Shown here: positions 19,409-51,190 of the stretch, piece after piece
Layout: each line of letters begins with the position of its first letter
Numbering within the stretch: position 1 is the first letter of the stretch
DNA from: Octopus sinensis
Taxonomy: Eukaryota
DNA: 64,000 nucleotides
Assembly (NCBI RefSeq): GCF_006345805.1
Contig: NC_043003.1
Coordinates: forward strand, 112,964,001-113,028,000
Reading direction: 5' to 3'
Program-made: the position numbers and the translations under genes
Notes under the pieces: model-generated
What the model saw: only the letters and a program-made list of their open reading frames with translations
Database searches by the model: none
Told to the model about the DNA's origin: nothing

Positions 19409-20335
19409 ATTCTTTTATTGGCCACAAGGGCTGATAAAAATTAATTATAACATAAAGGGACAAAACACGGGACAAAAGTTACAAAGGGTTTTGTCCGTTT
19501 GTAAAAATCCGTGTAAAAACAGTGTAACAACGAAAAATTATAACAATGAAAAACTCCCAATAGGGGGAGGCGCTTCGAAAGGTTCCTGGTGTAAAAACCC
19601 GTAAAAGCCACGGGAGCCTGGTCAAAAATGAGGGTGGGGGTAGAGAGCCCCTTTCTTCTTTTGTAATACCTTTTTTTACAGGTGTATCCTCAGAATGGCT
19701 CCTTTCATATTGGCTATTCTTGCGACATATATCCACCTTTCAATAAACTTGCTATCGGACAGCACTTCCCTCTCTACTCTCATCTTCCTTTTCAAGTGAA
19801 ACTTGAAAAAGTTGATGAGGCCTGGGCCAAAGAGGAATGTGTCTGACCTTAGCCCTTTCAAACGGGTCCACCATACCACCTCTTTCGCTACAGCCACTAG
19901 GCAAAGGAAAACTGCCTTGCCCTCCCGGTTAAAGGAGGTCGGCGGGCAATCTTCTCTATGGATTCAGCTGATAGCCGGATCCGTCCTATTCGCGACAGTA
20001 GCTGTTCGACATAAACCCATAGTTCAGCAATACTTGGACACTGGACGAGTGCGTGCAGAACGGTTTCGTCGTCCTGGCAGCACCTCGGGCAGGTCCGGTT
20101 GACGGCACTTCCGTGCCGGTAGAGTTTATCTCGAACAGGCAGAGACCATCGGTAGCACTGCCAAGCGAGGGATCTCTGGAAATTATCCATTGGCCCCGGC
20201 CCGAAAATCCTTCCGAACAGACTACTCAGCTCGTTATCGTCAAGGCCTAGAGTTTCCCCTAGTACGTCGTCGCACTTTTCTTCCACTAACCCTCTATAGA
20301 ACGCTAGAGTGGAACTACTACCGAACATCGAAAAA
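19409..20335 (-). mobile_element. 5'-truncated Tx1/L1-clade LINE: ORF2 C-terminus (zinc-binding zf-RVT-like region) and 3' UTR
   Basis: AWQCYRWSLPVRDKL...CPRCCQDDETVLHALVQCP...W, then VAKEVVWWTR...; one frameshift near 19897; 3' end CAGCCCTTGTGGCCAATAAAAGAA. Confidence 0.88.
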
Positions 20336-20339
20336 TACC

Positions 20340-20500
20340 TTAGGAATGAGAACCCAGGTTCGAAATTTCCCCAAGACACCTGATGAAGGCTTGGAGGGTA
20401 TACAGCCGAAACGATGTGTAAACAATAAACAAGATGAAGACAAATATCCGTCAAATGTAAATAATGTACATAATTCCTCATCTCTTAAATATAGAACTGA
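20340..20500 (+). ncRNA. Short Penelope-LTR-like repeat containing a minimal type I hammerhead ribozyme core
   Basis: ACAC-CTGATGA-A-GGCT...AGCC-GAAAC-GAT-GTGT at 20376-20419; cleavage triplet non-canonical in this copy. Confidence 0.6.
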
Positions 20501-22799: not shown

Positions 22800-23400
22800 A
22801 GACACCACATTAATTTGCGTAATGAGCTTTTCTTTTCTTTTATATTTAATAAAGTAGTGTGATTATGTATTTAGGTGTAAATTTTGTTGCGAAAGTGCCT
22901 ATGAAACGATATACATGTCCATGATTTATTACAGAACATTTACATATTGTGTTTTTCTTTAGACATTGGTTATTTATGGGGCAACAGTTACAGTTCCTAT
23001 TATTAAGCAATTCATTAAGTATATCGTTATAAAAGCGTCTTTTTATTGTATGAATGTTATTCTCTATTTGAAACATTGAGAAATTATCCCCCTTTCTATC
23101 TCGACCGAATAAAACAAAATATGTTAATACTCTCTCCTGATTAGATGCACGATTTATAAAGGCCATCCTAGATTGCTTTATAATCTCAAAATAGTTTTTT
23201 TAATGAAAATTTTACTGTATCCTTATTGAATACCCTACAATATATTCTTGATAGTGAAAATATTCATCTAATACTATTAAGAATTTACCTGGAATATATG
23301 TGGCTACACAGACTCTGTATGGGGCATTATGCCAGGTAATCTTGCTAATGTGTACCTTGCTTTCCATAAGTTTATTAACATAGTATAACTACTTGTCCGT
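22800..23400 (-). mobile_element. Penelope-like RT-linker/GIY-YIG remnant
   Basis: NCNCCPINNQCLKKNTICKCSV...YRFIGTFATKF resembles the CxC...CPxxxxCL...IYxxxV...YIG pattern. Confidence 0.65.
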
Positions 23401-23426
23401 ATATCTTTGCCTGTAATATTGCAAGA

Positions 23427-23820
23427 GGCGGCGAGCTGGCAGAAACGTTAGCACGCCGGGCGAAATGCTTAGCGGTATTTCGTCTGCGTTACGTTGTGAG
23501 TTCAAATTCCGCCGAGGTCGACTTTGCCTTTCATCCTTTCGGGGTCGATAAATTAAGTACCAGTTGCGCACTGGGGTCGATGTAATCGACTTAATACCTA
23601 TGTCTGTCCTTGTTTGTCCCCTCTGTGTTTAGCCCCTTGTGGGTAGTAAAAGAAATAGGTATTTCGTCTGCCACTACGTTCTGAGTTCAAATTCATCCAA
23701 GGTCGACTTTATCGATTAAATAAGTACCCAGTTACGCACTGGGGTCGATGTAATCGACTTAATCCTTTTGTCCTTGTTTGTCCTCTCTATGTTTAGCCCC
23801 TTGTGGGCAGTAAAATAAAT
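23427..23820 (+). mobile_element. SINE family A dimer (full unit plus 5'-truncated unit)
   Basis: GGCGGCGAGCTGGCAGAA head, GAGTTCAAATT B box; second unit starts GGTATTTCGTC at 23658. Confidence 0.92.
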
Positions 23821-29039: not shown

Positions 29040-30340
29040 AAGAAGAAAACCCCAAATAAAACAGAGAAACAACCAAAGGCTCTTTCGAATTTGCAAAACC
29101 TTCAGGTGATAGTTGCAAAGCCTACAAGAGATAGCTGTAAAATACATCATCGAACTAAAGAAGAGATTTGCATATTTAAAGGATGAAGTCGATGAAAAAA
29201 TAAAAAAAGGAGTTAAAAACAAAAGGTGAGACTGCAAACGTAATATCTGGCAAAAATGAGGTTCTTGCAAAGAAGAATGGATCTCGGTTGAAACTTGACA
29301 AATGCAATGTGGCTGAAGCTGCATCAAAACGAAATGATTATAGAACCCTCTTCAGAATTGTGCAGGGCCTGACAAATCACTAACAGTAATTGTAATAGAG
29401 TACCACCCGACTGCTTATGACAGGGGAAATTGCAATCACAACATTCAGTGAAGTGCAAAACAATCCAAGCCGGACATCAACTTTAAAGCTTCGTGATGGA
29501 ATAGAAAATGGCACCAATGATTCAGAGGTACTCCTCAGCGATATAACGAGGGAAGAGATGATCGACGCACTCAAGGCTCAGAAGAATAAGAAATCCCCTG
29601 GATTAGATTCCATACCTGCTAATCTTCTAAAACATGATGGAGATGTTAGCATAGAAAAGCTGACAAAAATCGGAATGATAATCTGTAATAAACGGAAGAC
29701 ACATACCAAATGGTCAAGAGGAATGATAATCAAAATCTGTGGAGGTACATGGTCTAGTGTTTCGAGCAGCAGATTCGCGATCGAGGGATCGCGGGTTCGA
29801 ATCTCAGATCGGGCGATGTGTGTGTTTATGAACGAAACACCTAAGCTTCATGCAGCTCCGGCAGAAGGTAATGGCGAACTTTTGCAAACTCTTTCGCTAC
29901 AACTTTCTCTCACTCTTTCCTCCTGCATCTTGCAGCTCACCTGCGACGGCCTGGCGTCCCGTTCAGGTGAAGAACCTATACGCCAAAGAAACCGGGAAAC
30001 CGGCCCTTATGAGCCAGACATGACTCGAGAAGGAACAAACATAATCAAAATATCTAAGAAAGTGAACTTGCGAACTTGGTTAAATATAACTCTTCTAATT
30101 ATGGTGCGAAATATCATGAGCTGGTTGTTTCTGAAAAGATTGCAGAAGAAATTGGGCCACAAACTTGGAAGCGGCCAGTCAGGTTTTCGAACATGAAGAT
30201 CATGCAATGTACACATATTCACACCAGGGAACATCTTTGAGCAATCACTGGTGTATGGAAGCCCATTAGTGATAAATTATGTTGTCTTCAAACAGGGGTT
30301 TGATAGCGTACACTGCCAATTTCCTTGGCTGAATAGACAG
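29040..30340 (+). mobile_element. Decayed RTE-clade LINE (linker and N-terminal RT domains), split by a SINE
   Basis: REEMIDALKAQKNKKSPGLDSIPANLLK...W..GMIIKI | SKKVNL..W..ITLL...RL...QSGFR..RSC...FKQGFDSVH. Confidence 0.85.
29737..30040 (+). mobile_element. SINE family B with 11-bp TSD ATAATCAAAAT
   Basis: TSD at 29726-29736 and 30041-30051. Confidence 0.93.
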
Positions 30341-40526: not shown

Positions 40527-40848
40527 GAGGGCGCGTGGCTTAGTGGTTAGGGCACTCGGCTCATGATCGTAAGGTTGTGAGTTCGATTCCCGGCGACGCG
40601 TTGTGTCCTTGAGCAAGACACTTTATTTCACGTTGCTCCAGTCCACTCAGCTGGCAAAAATGAGTTGTACTTGTATTTCAAAGGGTCAGCCTTGTCACTC
40701 TCTGTGTCACGCTGATTATCCCCGAGAACTACGTTAAGGGTACACGTGTCTGTGGAATGCTCAGCCATTTGCACGTTAATTTCACAGCAAGCTGTTCCGT
40801 TGATCGTATCAGCTGGGACCTCGTCGTCGTAACCGGCGGAGTCTTTAA
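40527..40848 (+). mobile_element. tRNA-headed SINE with CORE-like body (family D)
   Basis: TGGCTTAGTGG A box, GAGTTCGATTCC B box, GTTGTGTCCTTGAGCAAGACACTT...TCCAGTCCACTCAGCTG. Confidence 0.8.
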
Positions 40849-40850
40849 AT

Positions 40851-40984: not shown

Positions 40985-41240
40985 TCTTTATATATATAAA
41001 ACTGAGAATGTGTGTCTGTCTGTCTGTGTGTTTCCCTAAAACTTGAGAACTACACAACCAATTTCATTCAAATTTTACACATGCCGTACTTAGGGTCCCT
41101 GTAGTTTCATGGGAAAAAAAATGTTCAACTTCTTTCCTAGAGCGAGCCCATAGCAATATCATATCTTCTCCACTATTTCAGTATTACGCGTTAAAAGTGA
41201 AACAAAAGTATTTCTCTATTTTATGTCAGATACTTTCACT
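40985..41240 (+). mobile_element. Helitron-like 5' end (3' end not identified)
   Basis: A|TCTTTATATATATAAAA then TGTCTGTCTG, as in 3028; right boundary approximate. Confidence 0.55.
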
Positions 41241-41494
41241 TTAACAATAAAAATAATAATAACAATTGAATTATATGTAGTAAATAATAATTAAAATAAA
41301 ACTAAAGTAACATAACAAAAGTAAAAATAGCAATTGGTATAAAATTGCATCAATGACTTGAACTTGAATAAGTGGTTTCACATGAATGGGAATAAATTAA
41401 AAATAAAATTAGCGTGCAGAAATGGAATAGTCCAGATGGATAATAAAAAAAATTAAATTAAAGAAAAGACTATTGTCTATAAAGTATACAATGT

Positions 41495-41706
41495 AGAGAA
41501 AAAAGAAAATATTGTGAAATATATGTGACGAAAATGTAAACTCTCGATTCCGGGGATCGAGTGGGCATTTACATCTCATTGTAAATATTCTTTCATATGT
41601 CATTTTTTACTTTTATTTTTTCCTTTTCTTGTCATTCGCTTTCTTATTTTAAGTTCCCCGATTGTATTGTCCCCTCTATGTTCGCCCCTTGTGGGTAATA
41701 ATAAAA
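41495..41706 (+). mobile_element. 5'-truncated ORF1-only element (3' UTR only; copy 0)
   Basis: Near-identical to the last ~210 bp of copies 1 and 2. Confidence 0.9.
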
Positions 41707-43494
41707 TCACCTGGCTCCAAGCTATACGTGTTGTTATCTGTGACTAGACAGTGAAGTTTTGTTCTGTGTGAAGTGATTAATATCGCGCGAGGCGTTTGCC
41801 TCCACGTGTGGAAACGTTCTGAAGAAGGTGAATTGACCCTCTAGTCATGGCGACTTACGCGGGGGTCACGGGAAAAAAAATAATGATTCGTCGATAATCG
41901 TGAAGGATGTTTTCTTTGAGAAGAGTAAACTCAAAGAATATGAAAAGCTCTTCAAAAGGGAGGGTGATAGCGTGAAGCTAATCCCCCCCGCGAAAGCAAA
42001 AGAGGACAAAGAAAACAAGACAGTGACAAATAGAACCAAGACAAAAATACGAAGAAACTGGCAAGAGTGGAGATAGCCGAAATCGAAAAATGTCTGGGAG
42101 ACATAATGGGGAAATCAACCTACGTGAGTAGAGGCAAGAAATTTGGTACGGTGGAGGTGAGATGTGCAACGGAAGAAATTGCAGCCTCACTGGCTACCAC
42201 TGTACTAAGAGCCGAAAAATTTATAATGTGGCCCTCATACAAGGGAAGAAGAGGGATCCGGGTTAAAATCCCGAATATACCCCCAGAAGTGAAAACAGAA
42301 TGGCTGGCAACAGCTATTCTAGGAGCAGCAGACAGAGGAAGTGGAGGTGGAATCCTTTAAGGAGTCCAAGGCGGTAAACTGGAGAGGATATGGGGTAGAA
42401 CTGTGTTTGATGGCCACAAAAGAGGACATTGAAAGGTTCCCCTACAGAATAGAAATTGAAGATGAGAAAACCCTCAGTGTAATTGTAGAGGAAGAAAAAA
42501 CGAAACTGTTACTTGTGCGGGACAAGGGGGCACATTAAAAAAGAGAGCCCGTTATACGAATTCGTAGCGGAGTGCGAGCAGGAACTTGAAGAAAAGAGAA
42601 TACGGTAAATGAAAAAGAAAACATAGAAAAGGAAACAAAACAACAAGAGAAAGGAAATAATAAGTCAATGAAGGAAAAAGAAATAAAAGAAAAAGAAAGA
42701 AATAGAACCAAAACAGAGTCAGGAAAAAAAAAAGGAAAAAGAAACAACAGGAAAAAAAACAAGAGAGAGATCAGAATCAAACGAAAAGAAAAGACGGCAC
42801 ACAAAAAGAAAAAGAAAAGGAACATAAAACACGAGAGAAAGAGAGAACAGACACAAGAACCAAAAAAGACAAGAGAAGGAAGAAAAAAGAAAAGAAGGCA
42901 AAAAGAGAGAAAGAGAGAAACAAAGAGAGGAGAACAAGGAAGAAATAAGCCCGAAAAGAAAAACGAAGGAAAACGTAGGACGGAAACAAGATTACTGCTT
43001 CTACAAGTTAGTAACCTTCCATTTCTGCCCTGAAATGAAAGACTTGACATGTAATACGGAGGGACATATATGGGTCAACAGGATGACCGATCAGTGGCAG
43101 GAGACTGCTCTAATCCCCGAAGAAAGAGTCGCTGAGTTCCTCAGAGCTGCCGGAGAGAGTGTAATATTTTACACGAGTGTTCGAGTGAGAGAGCGGCTGC
43201 CTGAGGGCTCAGTGATTGACTTTAGAGAATTGAAAGCTATTATGGAATACGTATAGAATTGTGAGAAGAGAGAGAAGAAAGAAGAGAAAAAAGAAAATAT
43301 TGCGAAATATATGTGACGAAAATGTAACCTCTCGATTCCGGGGATCGAGTGGGCATTTACATCTCATTGTAAATATTCTTTCATATGTCATTTTTTACTT
43401 TTATTTTTTCCTTTTCTTGTCATTCGCTTTCTTATTTTAAGTTCCCCGATTGTACTGTCCCATCTATGTTCGCCCCTTGTGGGTAGTAATAAAA
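41707..43494 (+). mobile_element. ORF1-only (gag-only) non-LTR-type element, copy 1 (1788 bp)
   Basis: Tandem unit with a 1788-bp period to copy 2; 140-nt 5' UTR, one long reconstructable ORF, 3' UTR, A-rich end. Confidence 0.85.
41847..43256 (+). CDS. Tx1/L1-type ORF1-like protein, ~470 aa if frameshifts are corrected
   Basis: MATYAGVTG...GTVEVRC...GVRVKIPNIPPEV...VIVEG.KPNCYLCGTRGHIKKESP, K/E-rich linker, ...IMEYV; ATG-to-stop span 1410 nt; several frameshifts, mostly in homopolymers. Confidence 0.8.
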
Positions 43495-45281
43495 TCACAT
43501 GGCTCCAAGCTATACGTGTTGTTATCTGTGACTAGACAGTGAAATTTTGTTCTGTGTAAAGTGATTAATATCGCGCGAGGCGTTTGCCTCCACGTGTGGA
43601 AACGTTCCGAAGAAGGTGAATTGACCCTCTAGTCATGGCGACTTACGCAGGGGTCACGGGGAAAAAAAATAATGATTCGTCGATAATCGTGAAGGATGTT
43701 TTCTTTGAGAAGAGTAAACTCAAAGAATATGAAAAGCTCTTCAAAAGGGAGGGTGATAGCGTGAATCTAATCCCCCCCCCCCGCGAAAGCAAAAGAGGAC
43801 AAAGAAAACAAGACAGTGACATATAGAACCCAAGACAAAAATACGAAGAAGCTGGCAAGAGTGGAGATAGCCGAAATCGAAAAATGTCTGGGAGACATAA
43901 TGGGGAAATCAACCTACGTGAGTAGAGGCAAGAAATTTGGTACGGTGGAGGTGAGATGTGCAACGGAAGAAATTGCAGCCTCACTGGCTACCACTGTACT
44001 AAGAGCCGAAAAATTTATAATGTGGCCCTCATACAAGGGAAGAAGAGGGGTCCGGGTTAAAATCCCGAATATACCCCCAGAAGTGAAAACAGAATGGCTG
44101 GCAACAGCTATTCTAGGAGCAGCAGAAGAGGAAGTGGAGGTGGAATCCTTTAAGGAGTCCAAGGCGGTAAACTGGAGAGGATATGGGGTAGAACTGTGTT
44201 TGATGGCCACAAAAGAGGACATTGAAAGGTCCCCTACAGAATAGAAATTGAAGATGAGAAAACCCTCAGTGTAATTGTAGAGGGAAGAAAACCAAACTGT
44301 TACTTGTGCGGGACAAGGGGGCACATTAAAAAAGAGAGCCCGTTATACGAATTCGTAGCGGAGTGCGAGCAGGCAGGAACTTGAAGAAAAGACGGAATGG
44401 AATGAAAAAGAAAACATAGAAAAGGAAACAAAACAACAAGAGAAAGGAAATAATAAGTCAATGAAGGAAAAAGAAATAAAAGAAAAGAAAGAAATAGAAC
44501 CAAAACAGAGTCAGGAAAAAAAAAGGAAAAAGAAACAACAGGAAAAAAACAAGAGAGAGATCAGAATCAAACGAAAAGAAAAGACGGCGGCACACAAAAG
44601 AAAGAAAAGAACATAAAACACGAGAAAAGAGAGAGAACAGACAAAGAACAAAAAGACAAGAGAAGGAAGAAGAAAGAAAAGAAGGCAAAAAGAGAGAAAG
44701 AGAGAAACAAAGAGAGGAGAACAAGGAAGAAATAAGCCCGAAAAGAAAAACGAAGGAAAACGTAGGACGGAAACAAGATTACTGCTTCTACAAGTTAATA
44801 ACATTCCATTTCTGCCCTGAAATGAAAGACTTGACATGTAATACGGAGGGACATATATGGGTCAACAGGATGACCGATCAGTGGCAGGAGACTGCTCTAA
44901 TCCCCGAAGAAAGAGTCGCTGAGTTCCTCAGAGCTGCCGGAGAGAGTGTAATATTTTACACGAGTGTTCGAGTGAGAGAGCGGCTGCCTGAGGGCTCAGT
45001 GATTGACTTTAGAGAATTGAAAGCTATTATGGAATACGTATAGAATTGTGAGAAGAGAGAGAAGAAAGAAGAGAAAAAAGAAAATATTGTGAAATATATG
45101 TGACGAAAATGTAACCTCTCGATTCCGTGGATCGAGTGGGCATTTACATCTCATTGTAAATATTCTTTCATATGTCATTTTTTACTTTTATTTTTTCCTT
45201 TTCTTGTCATTCGCTTTCTTATTTTAAGTTCCCCGATTGTATTGTCCCCTCTATGTTCGCCCCTTGTGGGTAATAATAAAA
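43495..45281 (+). mobile_element. ORF1-only element, copy 2 (1787 bp)
   Basis: Near-identical to copy 1; differs by scattered substitutions and indels. Confidence 0.85.
43635..45043 (+). CDS. ORF1-like protein, copy 2 (frameshifted)
   Basis: ORF pieces 43635-43826, 43816-44244 and 44822-45043 join into the same protein as copy 1. Confidence 0.8.
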
Positions 45282-47208
45282 TCACATGGAGGAAATCTAT
45301 CCACGTGTGTTGTGAGTTATTTTGTATGTGAAAATTGGAAAACAAAACTGTGTAAAAATTGTCAAAAAATTGAATCGCGCGAGGCGTTTGCCGCTACGTG
45401 TTTGAACTTTTATAGAGGTGTGTCGACCCTCAAGTCATGGAGACTTACGCGGGGGTCGCCACAACAAAAAGTGACGAGTCTCTTAGAATAAAAGAAGTGT
45501 CTTTAGAAAAGAACAATTGAAGGAATACGAGAAGTTCGTCAAAAGGGAGGGTGACAGCGTGAAGCTGGTCCCGCCTGTGGAAACAATAGAAGAGAAAAAT
45601 AACAAGACGATAACGTATAGAACGCAAGATAGAAACACGAGAAAACTGGTGAGAGTGACGATTGAAGAAATAGAGAAATGTCTGGGGGACATCATGAAAA
45701 AAGCGACTTTTGTAGACAGAGGAAAGAAATATGGTACGGTGGAGGTGAGATGCGCAACAAGGAAGTGGCGGCCTCATTGGCTTCCACTGTCCTGAAAGCG
45801 GAAAATTTCACCATGTGGCCGACGTATAAGGAAGACGAGGGGTACGGGTAAGAGTCCCAAAGGTGCCCCCAGATATTAAAACAGAAATGCTGGTAACAGC
45901 CATTATTGGGGCAGCAAAAGAGGAAGTAGAAATAGGGTCAATTAAGGAGACGAACGTTGTAAATTGGAAGGGATTCGGAGTAGAGTTGTGGCTGATGGCC
46001 ACAATGGAAGACATCGAAAGATTTCCCTTCCAAATAGAAATAGAAAACGAGAAAACAATTAGTGTAATAGTGGAAGGCAGAAAACCGAATTGCTACCTGT
46101 GCGGATCAAGAGGCACATAAAAAAGGAATGTCCGCTGTATGAATTCACAGCGGAGCAAAAAGAGACACAAAGTGGAGAGAAGGAAAACGAACACGAAGGA
46201 AAGAACAGCGAAAACAAGGAAAAGGAAATAACGGAGAAGAAACAACAAGAAAGGGAAGTAACAGCGCACTGAAGGAAAATGAAAACAAAGGGAAGAAGAT
46301 AGTAGAAAAGGAGCAAAATTCACAGGGTGCAGAAGTAGTGGAGAAGGAGCCAAGGCAGAAGCAAGAGAAAGAAAAGGAAAGTACATTAAAGGAAAGAGAA
46401 AAAGCAGGAAAAGAACAAGAGAAGGAACAGAACCAAGAGAAAGGAAAAGATGGTATGCAAAAGGAAAAGAAACAACAGGAAAGGAACTTAGGCACAGGGT
46501 AGAGAGAGGCAGACAAAGAGCCAAAAAGACAAGAGAAGGAAAAAGAAAGAAGAGAAAGCAAAAAGGAGAGAAAGAGAGAAACCGAGGGAGGAGAAAAAAG
46601 AGGAAGTAATCCTAAGAGAAAAACTAGAGAAAACGTAGGTACGAATAGAAAATTCAAATACTATGGAACGTGTGATCCATCACAGGCACTATGAGGAGAT
46701 GGAAGATTTAATAAACGTAACAAACGGATATACGTGGGTCAGGATGGGCACCGAATGGAAAGAAACAGGTGCACTCGTCCACGAGAACGACGCCGAGGCG
46801 TTCATCGAGGCAGCTGGCAAGAACGTGTCAAAACATATGAAATGCCGACTTACAAGGTGGCCTCGAACGATGGAAGTTTACTCAGATTTGGTAGACATAA
46901 TGGAGTATATATAAAAGAAAAGGTATTGTGAAAACTTTAATTTGGAAATGATAAAAAGAACTTTAAATTCTGAAAAAAAAAAAAAGAAATGTTGAACTTT
47001 GTAAAACTTTTGAAATGTATGTTGAAAATGTATAAAATGTTTTATTTGGAAAATATTGTTGACGAATAAAAAACAAATGACGAAATGTAACCGCTCGATT
47101 TCGGGGATCGAGTGGGCATTACACCACATTGTACAAACTTCATAATTCATTATTCATTTTCCCGATTGTATTGTCCCATCTATGTAGCCCCTAGTGGGTA
47201 ATAATAAA
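45282..47208 (+). mobile_element. ORF1-only element, copy 3 (diverged subfamily, ~1.93 kb)
   Basis: Same architecture and termini, many synonymous and conservative changes. Confidence 0.85.
45437..46914 (+). CDS. ORF1-like protein, copy 3 (frameshifted), with all four CX2CX4HX4C ligands if one base is restored
   Basis: METYAGV...KEYEKFVKREGDSVKLVPP...YGTVEVRCAT...VIVEGRKPNCYLCGSRG(H)IKKECP...IMEYI. Confidence 0.8.
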
Positions 47209-47213
47209 ACAAC

Positions 47214-47560
47214 ATGGAGGAAAGCACATTCGAAAAGTGCGACTATTAAAGATATCTAACTGGAGGCGGTAAATTCACCGCAATAGAAGCAAGGTTCGTG
47301 TCAACGGAGCGTGCAAGGGAGTACTCGACTCGAACTTGTAAAGTGGAAATATTTTACTTTTACCTTTATATCTGGGACGTAGGACGTGCCGGAAAAAAAT
47401 TTAAAATGCTCCCCCCCCGCCCCAGAAGTAGCGGTAGGGTGGATTGTAGCCACACTTCTATACAAGAGGGAGGACAAGATACAATTGATCGAAATTACAA
47501 GAGGCGGGCTAACAATTATAGTCTGTTATATATTTTGAGTATTATCACTACCGTTATCAA
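47214..47560 (+). pseudogene. Fragment of a more diverged Tx1-type ORF1 directly after the array
   Basis: MEESTFEKC..*RYLTGGGKFTAIEARF...AREYST and PLYLGRRTCR...PP.PEVAVGWIVATLL align by eye with EIEKC...RGKKFGTVEVRC and PSYKGRRGVRVKIPNIPPEVKTEWLATAIL. Confidence 0.7.
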
Positions 47561-47701
47561 GATATAACTTTGTATTTTGTATTTTATGTGTAGATGTATA
47601 TATATAGATGTACATGTAATATGTACACATATATATACACATATATACATGCACTAGCACTATGGCCCGTCGTTGCCGAGTCTTTAATGCTAGTATATAT
47701 C

Positions 47702-50454: not shown

Positions 50455-51190
50455 TGCGACCTGGTAGAAACGTTAGCACGCCGGGCGAAATGCTTAGTAG
50501 TATTTCGTCTGCCGCTACGTTCTGAGTTCAAATTCCGCCGAGGTCGACTTTGCCTTTATTCTTTCGGGGTCGATAGATTAGATACCAGTTACGCACTGTG
50601 GTCGATATAATCGGCTTAATCCGTTTGTTTGTCCTTGTTTGTCCTCTCTGTGTTTAGCCCCTGTGGGTAGTAAAGAAATAGGTATTTCGTCTGTCTTTAC
50701 GTTCCGAGTTCAAATTCCGCCGAGGTCGACTTTGCCTTTCATCCTTTCCAGGTCGATTAAATAACTACCAGTTACGCACTGGGGTCGATATAATCGACTT
50801 AATCCGTTTGTCTGTCCTTGTTTGTCCCCTTTATGTCTTGCCCCTTGTTGGTAGTAAAGAAATAGGTATTTCGCCCGTCACTACGTTCTCAGTCTAAATT
50901 CCGCCCAGGTTGACTGTGCCTTTGATCCCTTCGGAGACGATAAATTAAGTACCAGTTTAACACTAGGGTCGTTATAATCGACTGGCCCCTCCCCCGCCAA
51001 TTGTTGCCTTTGTGGCAAAGTTTGAAACCATTATTATTATTATTGTTAAGGCGTCAAGTTGGCAGAATCGCTAGCACGCCTGGTGAAATGCATGGCGGCA
51101 TTTCGTCCGTCTTTACGTTCTGAGTTCAGATTCCGCCGAGGTCGACTTGCCTTTCACCGATAAATTTAGTACTTATGATTACTGGGGTCG
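50455..51190 (+). mobile_element. Head-to-tail multimer of SINE family A (3 joined units plus one further partial copy)
   Basis: Units restart at GGTATTTCG at 50681 and 50865; new head near 51048. Confidence 0.92.

Follow-up and report, generated by a model that had tools for sequence, protein, structure and literature searches.

We suggest that a tandem array in the genome of Octopus sinensis is the dead, interstitial relic of a non-autonomous retroelement that carries only the first open reading frame (ORF1) of an octopus long interspersed nuclear element (LINE) of the L1 superfamily (L1/Tx1-type) and that lies within a Helitron-like carrier, a reading to which we give a probability of about 0.72. 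The array consists of direct repeats joined head to tail from position 41495 to approximately position 47225 of a 64,000-nucleotide (nt) stretch of contig NC_043003.1 (assembly GCF_006345805.1, positions 112,964,001 to 113,028,000), and this whole stretch is referred to here as the window. The units belong to a long-lived, ORF1-only, non-autonomous L1-type family, as is evident from the depth of the family and from purifying selection on its reading frame. Three-frame translations and a tblastn search with the second open reading frame (ORF2) of the partner LINE revealed no reverse transcriptase or endonuclease coding in 41495-47209, in agreement with an earlier interpretation of these letters made without database searches (the sequence-only reading).

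Direct-repeat and BLAST analyses agreed with that reading on copies spaced by 1788 and 1787 bp and followed by a diverged third copy; one short partial copy, the stub, is also present. Units A and B are 97% identical across 1787 bp, a repeat far above chance expectation, and unit C, at approximately 73% identity to A and B in BLAST and approximately 70% over the whole unit, represents a distinct subfamily. The members of the array are as follows, with L008 being one of eight related Octopus vulgaris loci (L001 to L008) and with the start of each full unit given as its junction or target-site duplication (TSD) copy.

Positions 41495-41706, plus strand: stub, the terminal 212 nt of an A/B-type unit, consisting of 3' untranslated region (UTR) alone and matching that of the L008 unit at 99% identity.
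Positions 41707-43494, plus strand: unit A, 1788 bp, A/B-type; junction/TSD copy TCACCTGGCTCCAAGC; ATG at 41847; stop codon at 43254-43256.
Positions 43495-45281, plus strand: unit B, 1787 bp, A/B-type; junction/TSD copy TCACATGGCTCCAAGC; ATG at 43635; stop codon at 45041-45043.
Positions 45282-47209, plus strand: unit C, 1928 bp, C-type; junction/TSD copy TCACATGGAGGAAA; ATG at 45437; stop codon at 46912-46914.
Positions 47210-47222, plus strand: right TSD copy CAACATGGAGGAA, 13 nt, which opens the right arm of the carrier.

The borders of the units are fixed because three observations coincide: identity steps from 97% to approximately 70% exactly at 45281/45282, immediately after ...CCCCTTGTGGGTAATAATAAAA; the O. 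vulgaris arrays have the same limits, with the eight complete units of L001 starting at the base that adjoins the left flank and finishing precisely with the tail and the other arrays behaving likewise; and this tail is common to LINE and short interspersed nuclear element (SINE) ends. The true 3' ends are thus the tails (...CCCCTTGTGGGTAATAATAAAA) that finish at 41706, 43494, 45281, and 47209, and it is for this reason that the partial copy lies on the left of the array and not on the right. The sequence-only reading was correct with respect to the array, which BLAST recovered, but it displaced the borders by 212 bp and put the stub at the right-hand end instead of at 41495-41706. What it described as an A-rich end is an internal polypurine stretch just 3' of the stop codon, from which the 3' UTR runs approximately 230 nt further, and the 5' UTR, which it took to be approximately 350 nt long, measures approximately 140 nt. 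We also considered an array in which long terminal repeats (LTRs) alternate with internal segments, as suggested by a polypurine run ahead of TG...CA with TGG behind it, features that resemble a polypurine tract, an LTR, and a primer binding site; this was ruled out by the O. vulgaris arrays, which open with the 5' UTR and have no preceding 212-nt segment, and by the LINE/SINE tail in which that segment ends.

The first-round homologues (n = 9) were all O. vulgaris gene models, and their genomic contexts resolved into eight loci on at least six chromosomes, comprising seven arrays and one solo copy (L005). A satellite restricted to the window locus, which the sequence-only reading had listed as a finding that would count against it, was ruled out by these eight further loci, one of them solo. 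The seven arrays contain 1, 1, 2, 3, 4, 8, and at least 8 units; unit length is 1.76 to 1.94 kb at all loci; and the loci are interstitial, being situated 12 to 157 Mb inside chromosomes of 73 to 225 Mb. Unit B is 93 to 96% identical to O. vulgaris B-type units, and unit C is 93 to 94% identical to the C-type units of L003 and L004. L008 was examined as a possible orthologue of the window locus and is the closest found, but its flanks are just 90 to 94% identical. There are at least four subfamilies (B, C, X, and L005-type), mutually 70 to 73% identical and with the architecture retained, and two O. vulgaris copies have intact ORFs, one of the B type (467 amino acids [aa]; unit 5 of L001, L001_u5) and one of the X type (approximately 474 aa; L006). 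Comparison of B and C types gave dN/dS ratios of 0.14 for codons 1 to 240 and 0.08 for codons 121 to 240, at a dS of 1.3 to 1.6, which is saturated; the ORF has therefore been kept by selection during divergence of the lineages. The subfamilies, their common architecture, the two intact ORFs, and the dN/dS values of 0.08 to 0.14 uphold the view, already expressed in the sequence-only reading, that the units form a family and did not arise from a single accidental deletion. Adjacent units are often 99 to 100% identical and have private junction variants in common, and L001 and L002 have in common an ordered series of unit types.

A single reconstructable ORF per copy had been proposed, and each full copy in the window does contain approximately 470 codons with a CCHC knuckle. 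All three window ORFs are broken by frameshifting indels, approximately 10 one-base indels each: relative to the intact 467-codon L001_u5, they number 10 in unit A and 9 in unit B, and relative to C-type copies, unit C has approximately 11. Most of these indels are single bases in homopolymers (A or C runs), and for this reason some of the window frameshifts may be assembly errors. Across 41847-46914, approximately 10 indels per unit stand against just 3 to 5% substitutions, and O. vulgaris copies usually have far fewer; the excess may reflect homopolymer errors of the source assembly. The intact protein comprises an N-terminal region, a core domain, the CCHC knuckle, a long K/E-rich linker, and a C-terminal domain of approximately 80 aa. 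Pfam detected only the knuckle, as a weak zf-CCHC match, and weak matches of the C-terminal domain (STIV_B116, RES, and others) were dismissed as noise. Structure prediction, which the sequence-only reading had recommended, succeeded for the core: an AlphaFold2 model of this N-domain from a 78-sequence alignment reached a pLDDT of 89.9 and has an RRM-like fold, with the RRM-type domains of TAP/NXF1, IMP3, and UPF3B as its best PDB matches at Foldseek E values that are marginal (1e-3 to 1e-2). A model of the 380-aa protein from 16 sequences was unusable (pLDDT of 42.8). The N-terminal region, RRM-like domain, CCHC knuckle, linker, and C-terminal domain together constitute the full ORF1 protein layout of the clade of the LINE. 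The C-terminal domain of the unit ORF showed no BLAST similarity to ORF2 or to the LINE ORF1 C terminus; a shared (A/S)EF(L/F)xxxG pattern was seen by eye only. A profile search of 1.84 billion representatives returned 898 relatives at an E value of ≤1e-3; ten of them were looked up and proved to be from Octopus bimaculoides, O. sinensis, O. vulgaris, and Argonauta hians or to be unnamed read-derived assembly entries, and no named relative outside the octopods was present among these ten. Database entries P0001-P0009 and P0130-P0132 are ORF1-only units or LINE ORF1s listed as uncharacterised genes of O. vulgaris or O. sinensis; one ORF1 entry is named "EPM2A-interacting 1-like," and several gene models splice units to adjoining sequence.

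In each of the seven O. vulgaris arrays, a single LINE of approximately 5 kb comes directly after the last unit in the same head-to-tail orientation, and every unit is closed by a complete tail of its own upstream of the LINE. Continuation of other genomic copies into an ORF2, which the sequence-only reading had said would refute it, was thus seen to the extent that a LINE succeeds the units in all seven arrays, but not in the sense of a continuous element, as each unit has its own tail; with an ORF2-bearing LINE at the end of all seven, the array units are therefore not free of an autonomous partner. The LINE ORF1 and the unit ORF align over 231 aa at 38% identity (E value of 2e-48), and the LINE ORF2, of approximately 1130 aa, contains the Pfam domains Exo_endo_phos (apurinic/apyrimidinic endonuclease [APE]), RVT_1 (reverse transcriptase), and zf-RVT. 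The partner is a LINE of the L1 superfamily, because its ORF2 matches the human L1 ORF2 protein (2.7e-58 over approximately 865 residues) far better than R2 (5e-23). The LINE and the units may be members of the Tx1 clade, features of which are present in ORF2 (APE, reverse transcriptase, and a C-terminal zinc knuckle) and in ORF1 (CCHC and the RRM-like fold, with its marginal Foldseek E values). In a 2026 annotation of O. vulgaris repeats, 13 "L1-Tx1" families are listed as recently active; the partner LINE is not named there, and ORF1-only elements or arrays are not mentioned (PMC13282606).

The last 45 to 47 nt of the units are 89 to 100% identical to the 3' end of the LINE, and the remaining UTRs are unrelated, so that the tail and the weak coding similarity are all that the two have in common. 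The tail is present in all four members of the window array:

Positions 43445-43494, plus strand: 3' tail module CCCGATTGTAYTGTCCCMTCTATGTTCGCCCCTTGTGGGTARTAATAAAA, with AATAAA inside and no poly(A) after it; also at 41657-41706, 45232-45281, and 47161-47209.

A related version of this 45- to 50-nt tail closes an abundant tRNA-derived octopus SINE, many copies of which are found in the window, where the 14-nt tail core GCCCCTTGTGGGTA occurs 10 times against 0 expected. These SINE copies, together with the composition of the sequence, characterise the window as octopus DNA. The window array is the only one of the eight arrays that lacks the LINE; tblastn with the partner ORF2 found no copy elsewhere in the window, only a fragment at 19718-20346 on the minus strand, which encodes the C-terminal ~210 residues (with a CX2C...H...C knuckle) of a different, though related, L1-type ORF2 that is 57 to 61% identical to the partner ORF2. 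A protein search with ORF2 for further LINE loci yielded nothing above 59 to 61% identity and no new contexts, because the LINE lacks annotation in O. vulgaris. The LINE copies at L002:14848-19760, L003:11202-16220, and L004:11164-16331 are 94 to 97% identical in ORF2, whereas identity in the 5' UTR/ORF1 region is approximately 71% between L002 and the others and approximately 81% between L003 and L004; near-identical ORF2 alongside far-diverged ORF1 suggests that ORF1 modules have been exchanged between LINE lineages. The SINE is itself arranged head to tail at two places in the window, as 2.6 copies with a 184-bp period at 50500-50983 and as a dimer at 23400-23820; each of these arrays has a 5'-truncated copy opening (ATAG)GTATTTCG directly behind the tail of the previous copy, a habit that is the same as that of the ORF1-only units and the LINE with that tail. 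Another family, at L005:1000-1254 and L005:10000-10261, has a coding part spliced into gene model P0003 and ends in the same kind of tail (...CCCCT(T/C)GTGGGTAATAAA...), so more families than the three studied here may use it.

The junctions fall into two groups. At the window, L001, L002, L007, and L008, the starts of the units, of the LINE, and of the right flank read CA(C/A)CATGGAGGAAA or a locus-private variant of it; at L003, L004, and L006, the corresponding starts read CAATTCCAGTCT, and the site lies 300 bp further along the carrier. Junction bases track the locus and not the subfamily, with B-type and C-type units bearing either leader according to location. At L006, one site holds four different elements (X, B, and C units and the LINE), all with identical 11 to 12 nt, and at L003 and L004, the LINE is flanked by 18 to 19 nt and the units are flanked by 12 nt from the same left border. 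The solo L005 unit, which lies directly after the tail of another element, has a 20-nt flanking repeat (19/20 identical). A search for TSDs, advised in the sequence-only reading, was thereby rewarded with duplications of 12 to 20 nt at the O. vulgaris junctions and at L005. Two exact positions in one carrier family have been re-used many times, yet the three known nick sites have just A-rich/(T)CA in common (here and below, an unbracketed slash between bases marks a nick or border). Because the duplications follow locus and not subfamily, the junction sequences point to separate target-primed insertions that re-used one bottom-strand nick, accompanied by local duplication; unequal exchange must have contributed the latter, since neighbours are 99 to 100% identical with private junction variants.

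The left end of the window array departs from this pattern. Its junction reads LF...GTAGAGAAAAAAGAA/AATATTGTG, straight into a unit 3' UTR, whereas the left arm of intact carriers ends ...AGAAGATTTGAA/CACATGG (also written ...GTAGAGAAAAAAGAAGATTTGAA/CACATGG). The stub joins the carrier inside a shared stretch, AGAGAAAAAAGAA, and the same AGAGAAAAAAGAA is found after the stop codon of the unit. The simplest reading is a deletion of approximately 1.6 kb between two 13-bp repeats; the alternative is a 5'-truncated insertion joined at the microhomology.

All eight arrays, that of the window and the seven of O. vulgaris, are inside the same carrier of approximately 1 kb, both ends of which are present in the window:

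Positions 40985-41494, plus strand: carrier left arm, which starts TCTTTATATATATAAAACTGAG directly after a (TA)n run.
Positions 47210-47693, plus strand: carrier right arm, made up of RFa (47210-47511) and RFb (47512-47693); a GC-rich hairpin, then TTTAATGCTAG, then the T of (TA)n.

The left arm (approximately 500 bp) is 93 to 96.5% identical before the arrays at L001, L003, L004, L006, and L008 and is found in part at L002. The right arm is 85 to 97% identical between loci, with RFa and RFb being 85 to 92% identical at L002, L007, and L008 and RFb alone being present at L003 and L004. The carrier starts TCTTTATATATA... (TCTTTATATA...) after (TA)n, that is, with 5'-TC, and it has a conserved 3' end, GACCCGGCAACGACGGGTC-TTTAATG-CTAG/T, in which a GC-rich hairpin is followed by seven bases and CTAG at an A/T target. 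Among the O. vulgaris loci, five showed the 5' end and four showed the 3' end. We regard the carrier as Helitron-like on the resemblance of these termini. A second, similar hairpin-plus-TTTAAAT end, followed by (TA)n, is located at 40810-40850, just upstream of the carrier (40985, 47693), which suggests that several such elements have inserted in or beside TA microsatellites. The left arm is partly duplicated at L003:6643-7317 and at L008, where its positions 71 to 214 occur twice.

These observations can be assembled into a plausible history. The unit would be transcribed and its protein would coat its own RNA; the ORF2 protein of the LINE may then recognise the shared tail, as in stringent LINE/SINE pairs, and carry out target-primed reverse transcription at A-rich/(T)CA nicks to give TSDs of 12 to 20 bp. 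Different subfamilies and the LINE would enter the same nick repeatedly, duplicating the same target bases each time, and unequal crossing-over would subsequently multiply neighbouring units. The window array itself lacks the LINE, most of its first unit was probably removed at the 13-bp microhomology, and all its ORFs are broken. Mobilisation of the units in trans by the LINE ORF2 protein is what the sequences suggest, and a shared LINE tail is what such mobilisation would need. A bolder version, which we hold to be doubtful, makes the array an interstitial mollusc counterpart of the fly telomere system, in which the ORF1-only lineage homes beside its own or its partner's tail and ordered [ORF1-only]n-LINE cassettes are spread by the carrier. 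Since the tail contains AATAAA with no poly(A) after it, transcripts probably run on slightly into the next junction; such run-on transcripts could pair with the duplicated target bases elsewhere, and reverse transcription could start internally at the tail, providing a route for homing and amounting to a partnership of a LINE, a protein-coding passenger, and a DNA transposon.

A number of points weigh against our interpretation. Trans-mobilisation is argued from the shared tail and co-location alone; a single solo insertion (L005) lies outside the carrier; all eight arrays are in one carrier family, so that much of their spread may be due to transposition or duplication of the carrier; and A-rich/(T)CA by itself does not account for four hits on one site. 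The LINE invariably closes the array, with no units after it, an order that is not foreseen by a simple model of re-insertion. The left junction of the window array has microhomology and no TSD, leaving only the right TSD copy, and the sample of loci, reached via annotated ORF1 proteins, is biased. Carrier arms (93 to 96.5%) and units (93 to 98%) are similarly diverged between loci, and transposition or segmental duplication of the carrier may for this reason account for part of the dispersal; with all arrays in one carrier, part of their spread may have occurred at the DNA level. Taken to its conclusion, this argument envisages a few ancestral insertions into a carrier, the spread of whole cassettes, and unequal crossing-over, with the units persisting today as a local satellite. 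We consider such a largely DNA-level history possible, though not the explanation that we would expect to prevail: it accommodates the presence of every array in one carrier with 5'-TC, a 3' hairpin plus CTAG, and an A/T target, the matching divergence of arms and units, the 99 to 100% identity and private junction variants of adjoining units, the ordered series of unit types common to L001 and L002, and copy numbers ranging from 1 to at least 8. It gives no account of how four different elements, the LINE among them, came to occupy one nick with a duplication each (L006), and it leaves unexplained the two insertion sites with site-specific junctions, the duplications of variable length that share a fixed left border, the solo copy at L005 flanked by its 20-nt duplication, and strong purifying selection between subfamilies. 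Spread at the DNA level is complementary to the interpretation that we favour, not exclusive of it, and certainly explains part of the pattern.

The constant position of the LINE could alternatively reflect template jumping, in which the ORF2 protein passes from the 5' end of the LINE RNA to the tails of ORF1-only RNAs and lays down [units]n-LINE in one integration. Exactly one LINE, the 3'-most element, in 7/7 O. vulgaris arrays is in keeping with this mechanism, as are the mixture of subfamilies within arrays (the window and L006) and the location of the sole truncated member of the window array at its 5' end; we nonetheless judge it improbable, because the junctions repeat 12 to 19 nt of local target according to locus and not according to RNA subfamily, which end-to-end jumps would not produce, and because LINE and unit duplications differ in length at one site. 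It is similarly hard to regard the units as amplified, co-transcribed 5' modules that supply extra or alternative ORF1 to a composite LINE. The units of the O. vulgaris arrays are always upstream of a LINE, and LINE copies that are 94 to 97% identical in ORF2 and only ~71% identical in their own ORF1 region hint at an exchange of modules, but each unit has a complete tail of the kind that terminates retrotransposition together with its own duplication, the LINE is absent both from the window array and from the L005 copy, and the unit ORF is just 38% identical to the LINE ORF1, and we think this explanation quite improbable. Low dN/dS values and the presence of gene models in the O. vulgaris and O. 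sinensis annotations would also be expected of a cluster of host genes domesticated from a LINE ORF1, as in the case of L1TD1, and maintained by selection at the level of the host; this we regard as very improbable indeed, in that most copies are broken, copies are carried inside other mobile elements on at least six chromosomes, LINE-type tails and duplications are retained, and a single conserved locus is not evident.

Two non-coding elements of the units are conserved in addition to the tail:

Positions 43314-43366, plus strand: 3' UTR stem-loop TGACGAAAATGTAACC-CTCGATTCCGGGGATCGAG-TGGGCATTTACATC; also starting at 41526, 45101, and 47078; kept in four subfamilies.
Positions 43570-43588, plus strand: 5' UTR motif ATCGCGCGAGGCGTTTGCC; also at 41782 and 45374; near-invariant in B, C, X, and L005-type units.

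The stem of the 3' UTR element has a 16-bp consensus with one compensatory pair, and the stretch between the stem-loop and the tail is variable; the 5' UTRs of the subfamilies are poorly alignable outside ATCGCGCGAGGCGTTTGCC. The stem-loop had no match in Rfam at the gathering threshold or at E values up to 10, so that a hammerhead ribozyme or Penelope-like/retrozyme identity, suggested by the tandem layout and a GACGAAA...stem motif, gained nothing from Rfam, and a tRNA-like origin of the 3' hairpin was not supported by ARAGORN, which was negative. Elsewhere in the window, positions 1-138 are 91% identical to L001:2528-2665, approximately 1.7 kb upstream of the L001 array, and represent a repeat, and a 259-aa ORF at 29417-30196 on the plus strand with reverse-transcriptase-like N-terminal motifs (…KSPGLDSIPANLLK…) belongs to another retroelement.

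Persistent, diversifying lineages of LINE derivatives with ORF1 alone are represented mainly by HAL1 in mammals and by elements at the telomeres of Drosophila, and a literature search that did not extend to Repbase or Dfam produced no description of ORF1-only derivatives, or of such arrays, in cephalopods or molluscs. If our interpretation is correct, the ORF1-only lifestyle is not tied to telomeres, as it is found in interstitial arrays of cephalopods under strong purifying selection, and the octopus elements offer a natural system in which to investigate the cis contribution of an ORF1 protein where ORF2 is supplied from outside. The shared tail indicates the likely LINE partner of a very abundant octopus SINE, the exact re-use of an insertion site by several members of a family is documented, and LINE copies with near-identical ORF2 are found to have very different ORF1. 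The "uncharacterised genes" of octopus gene sets that correspond to these units should be treated as repeats.

The likeness to HAL1 and HeT-A proposed in the sequence-only reading is sound in its logic, with an ORF1-only family and homology to a LINE ORF1, but does not extend to membership, given the interstitial location, the TSDs, and the specific tail of the octopus units. HAL1 of mammals is likewise a family of non-autonomous L1-superfamily derivatives with ORF1 and without ORF2, presumably served by the ORF2 of a related LINE. The octopus units differ in host phylum and in the type of ORF1, which is RRM-like plus CCHC and not coiled-coil/RRM/CTD, and they have, in place of poly(A), a specific 45-nt tail shared with a LINE and a SINE, and are arranged in head-to-tail arrays; the resemblance is one of kind, and no sequence relationship is to be expected. 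Tx1L, the subject of work by Garrett, Knutzon and Carroll in 1989 and by Kojima and Fujiwara in 2004, reportedly resides inside Tx1D of Xenopus and is said to exemplify the site-specific LINEs of the Tx1 clade. The octopus LINE is similar to Tx1L in possessing APE, reverse transcriptase, and a C-terminal zinc knuckle, a CCHC ORF1, and a fixed site in a DNA-transposon-like carrier, whereas the octopus elements use two carrier positions and one outside. We know of no counterpart in the Tx1 system for the ORF1-only partners and their arrays.

HeT-A, together with TART/TAHRE, resembles the octopus units in being a gag/ORF1-only element, under selection and diversified, that occurs in mixed head-to-tail arrays with an autonomous relative, whose reverse transcriptase it presumably uses. 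ORF1-only lineages have arisen repeatedly at Drosophila telomeres, a niche with which the loss of ORF2 has been associated (10.1101/2025.06.09.658640). In contrast, the octopus loci lie within chromosomes and not at their ends, array length is modest (from 1 unit to at least 8), the units are flanked by TSDs and insertion was thus endonuclease dependent, the partner belongs to the L1 superfamily (with L1 ORF2p being closest and zf-RVT being present) and not to the Jockey clade, and a function for the host is not evident. Stringent LINE/SINE pairs, such as UnaL2 and UnaSINE1 of the eel, share a 3' tail (PMC5786205, PMC3747384), and the octopus set similarly combines a LINE and its passengers through a specific stem-loop 3' tail and not through poly(A), except that one octopus passenger is protein coding, with a full ORF1 and a length of approximately 1.8 kb, and is not a SINE derived from an RNA gene. 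Tandem dimers of transposable elements have been attributed by McGurk and Barbash to double insertion at one site followed by expansion through unequal exchange (10.1101/158386); the octopus arrays agree with this scheme in having head-to-tail copies split by a TSD and near-identical neighbours that expand, and they differ from it in that one site is shared by up to four family members and a LINE, in a fixed order with the LINE last.

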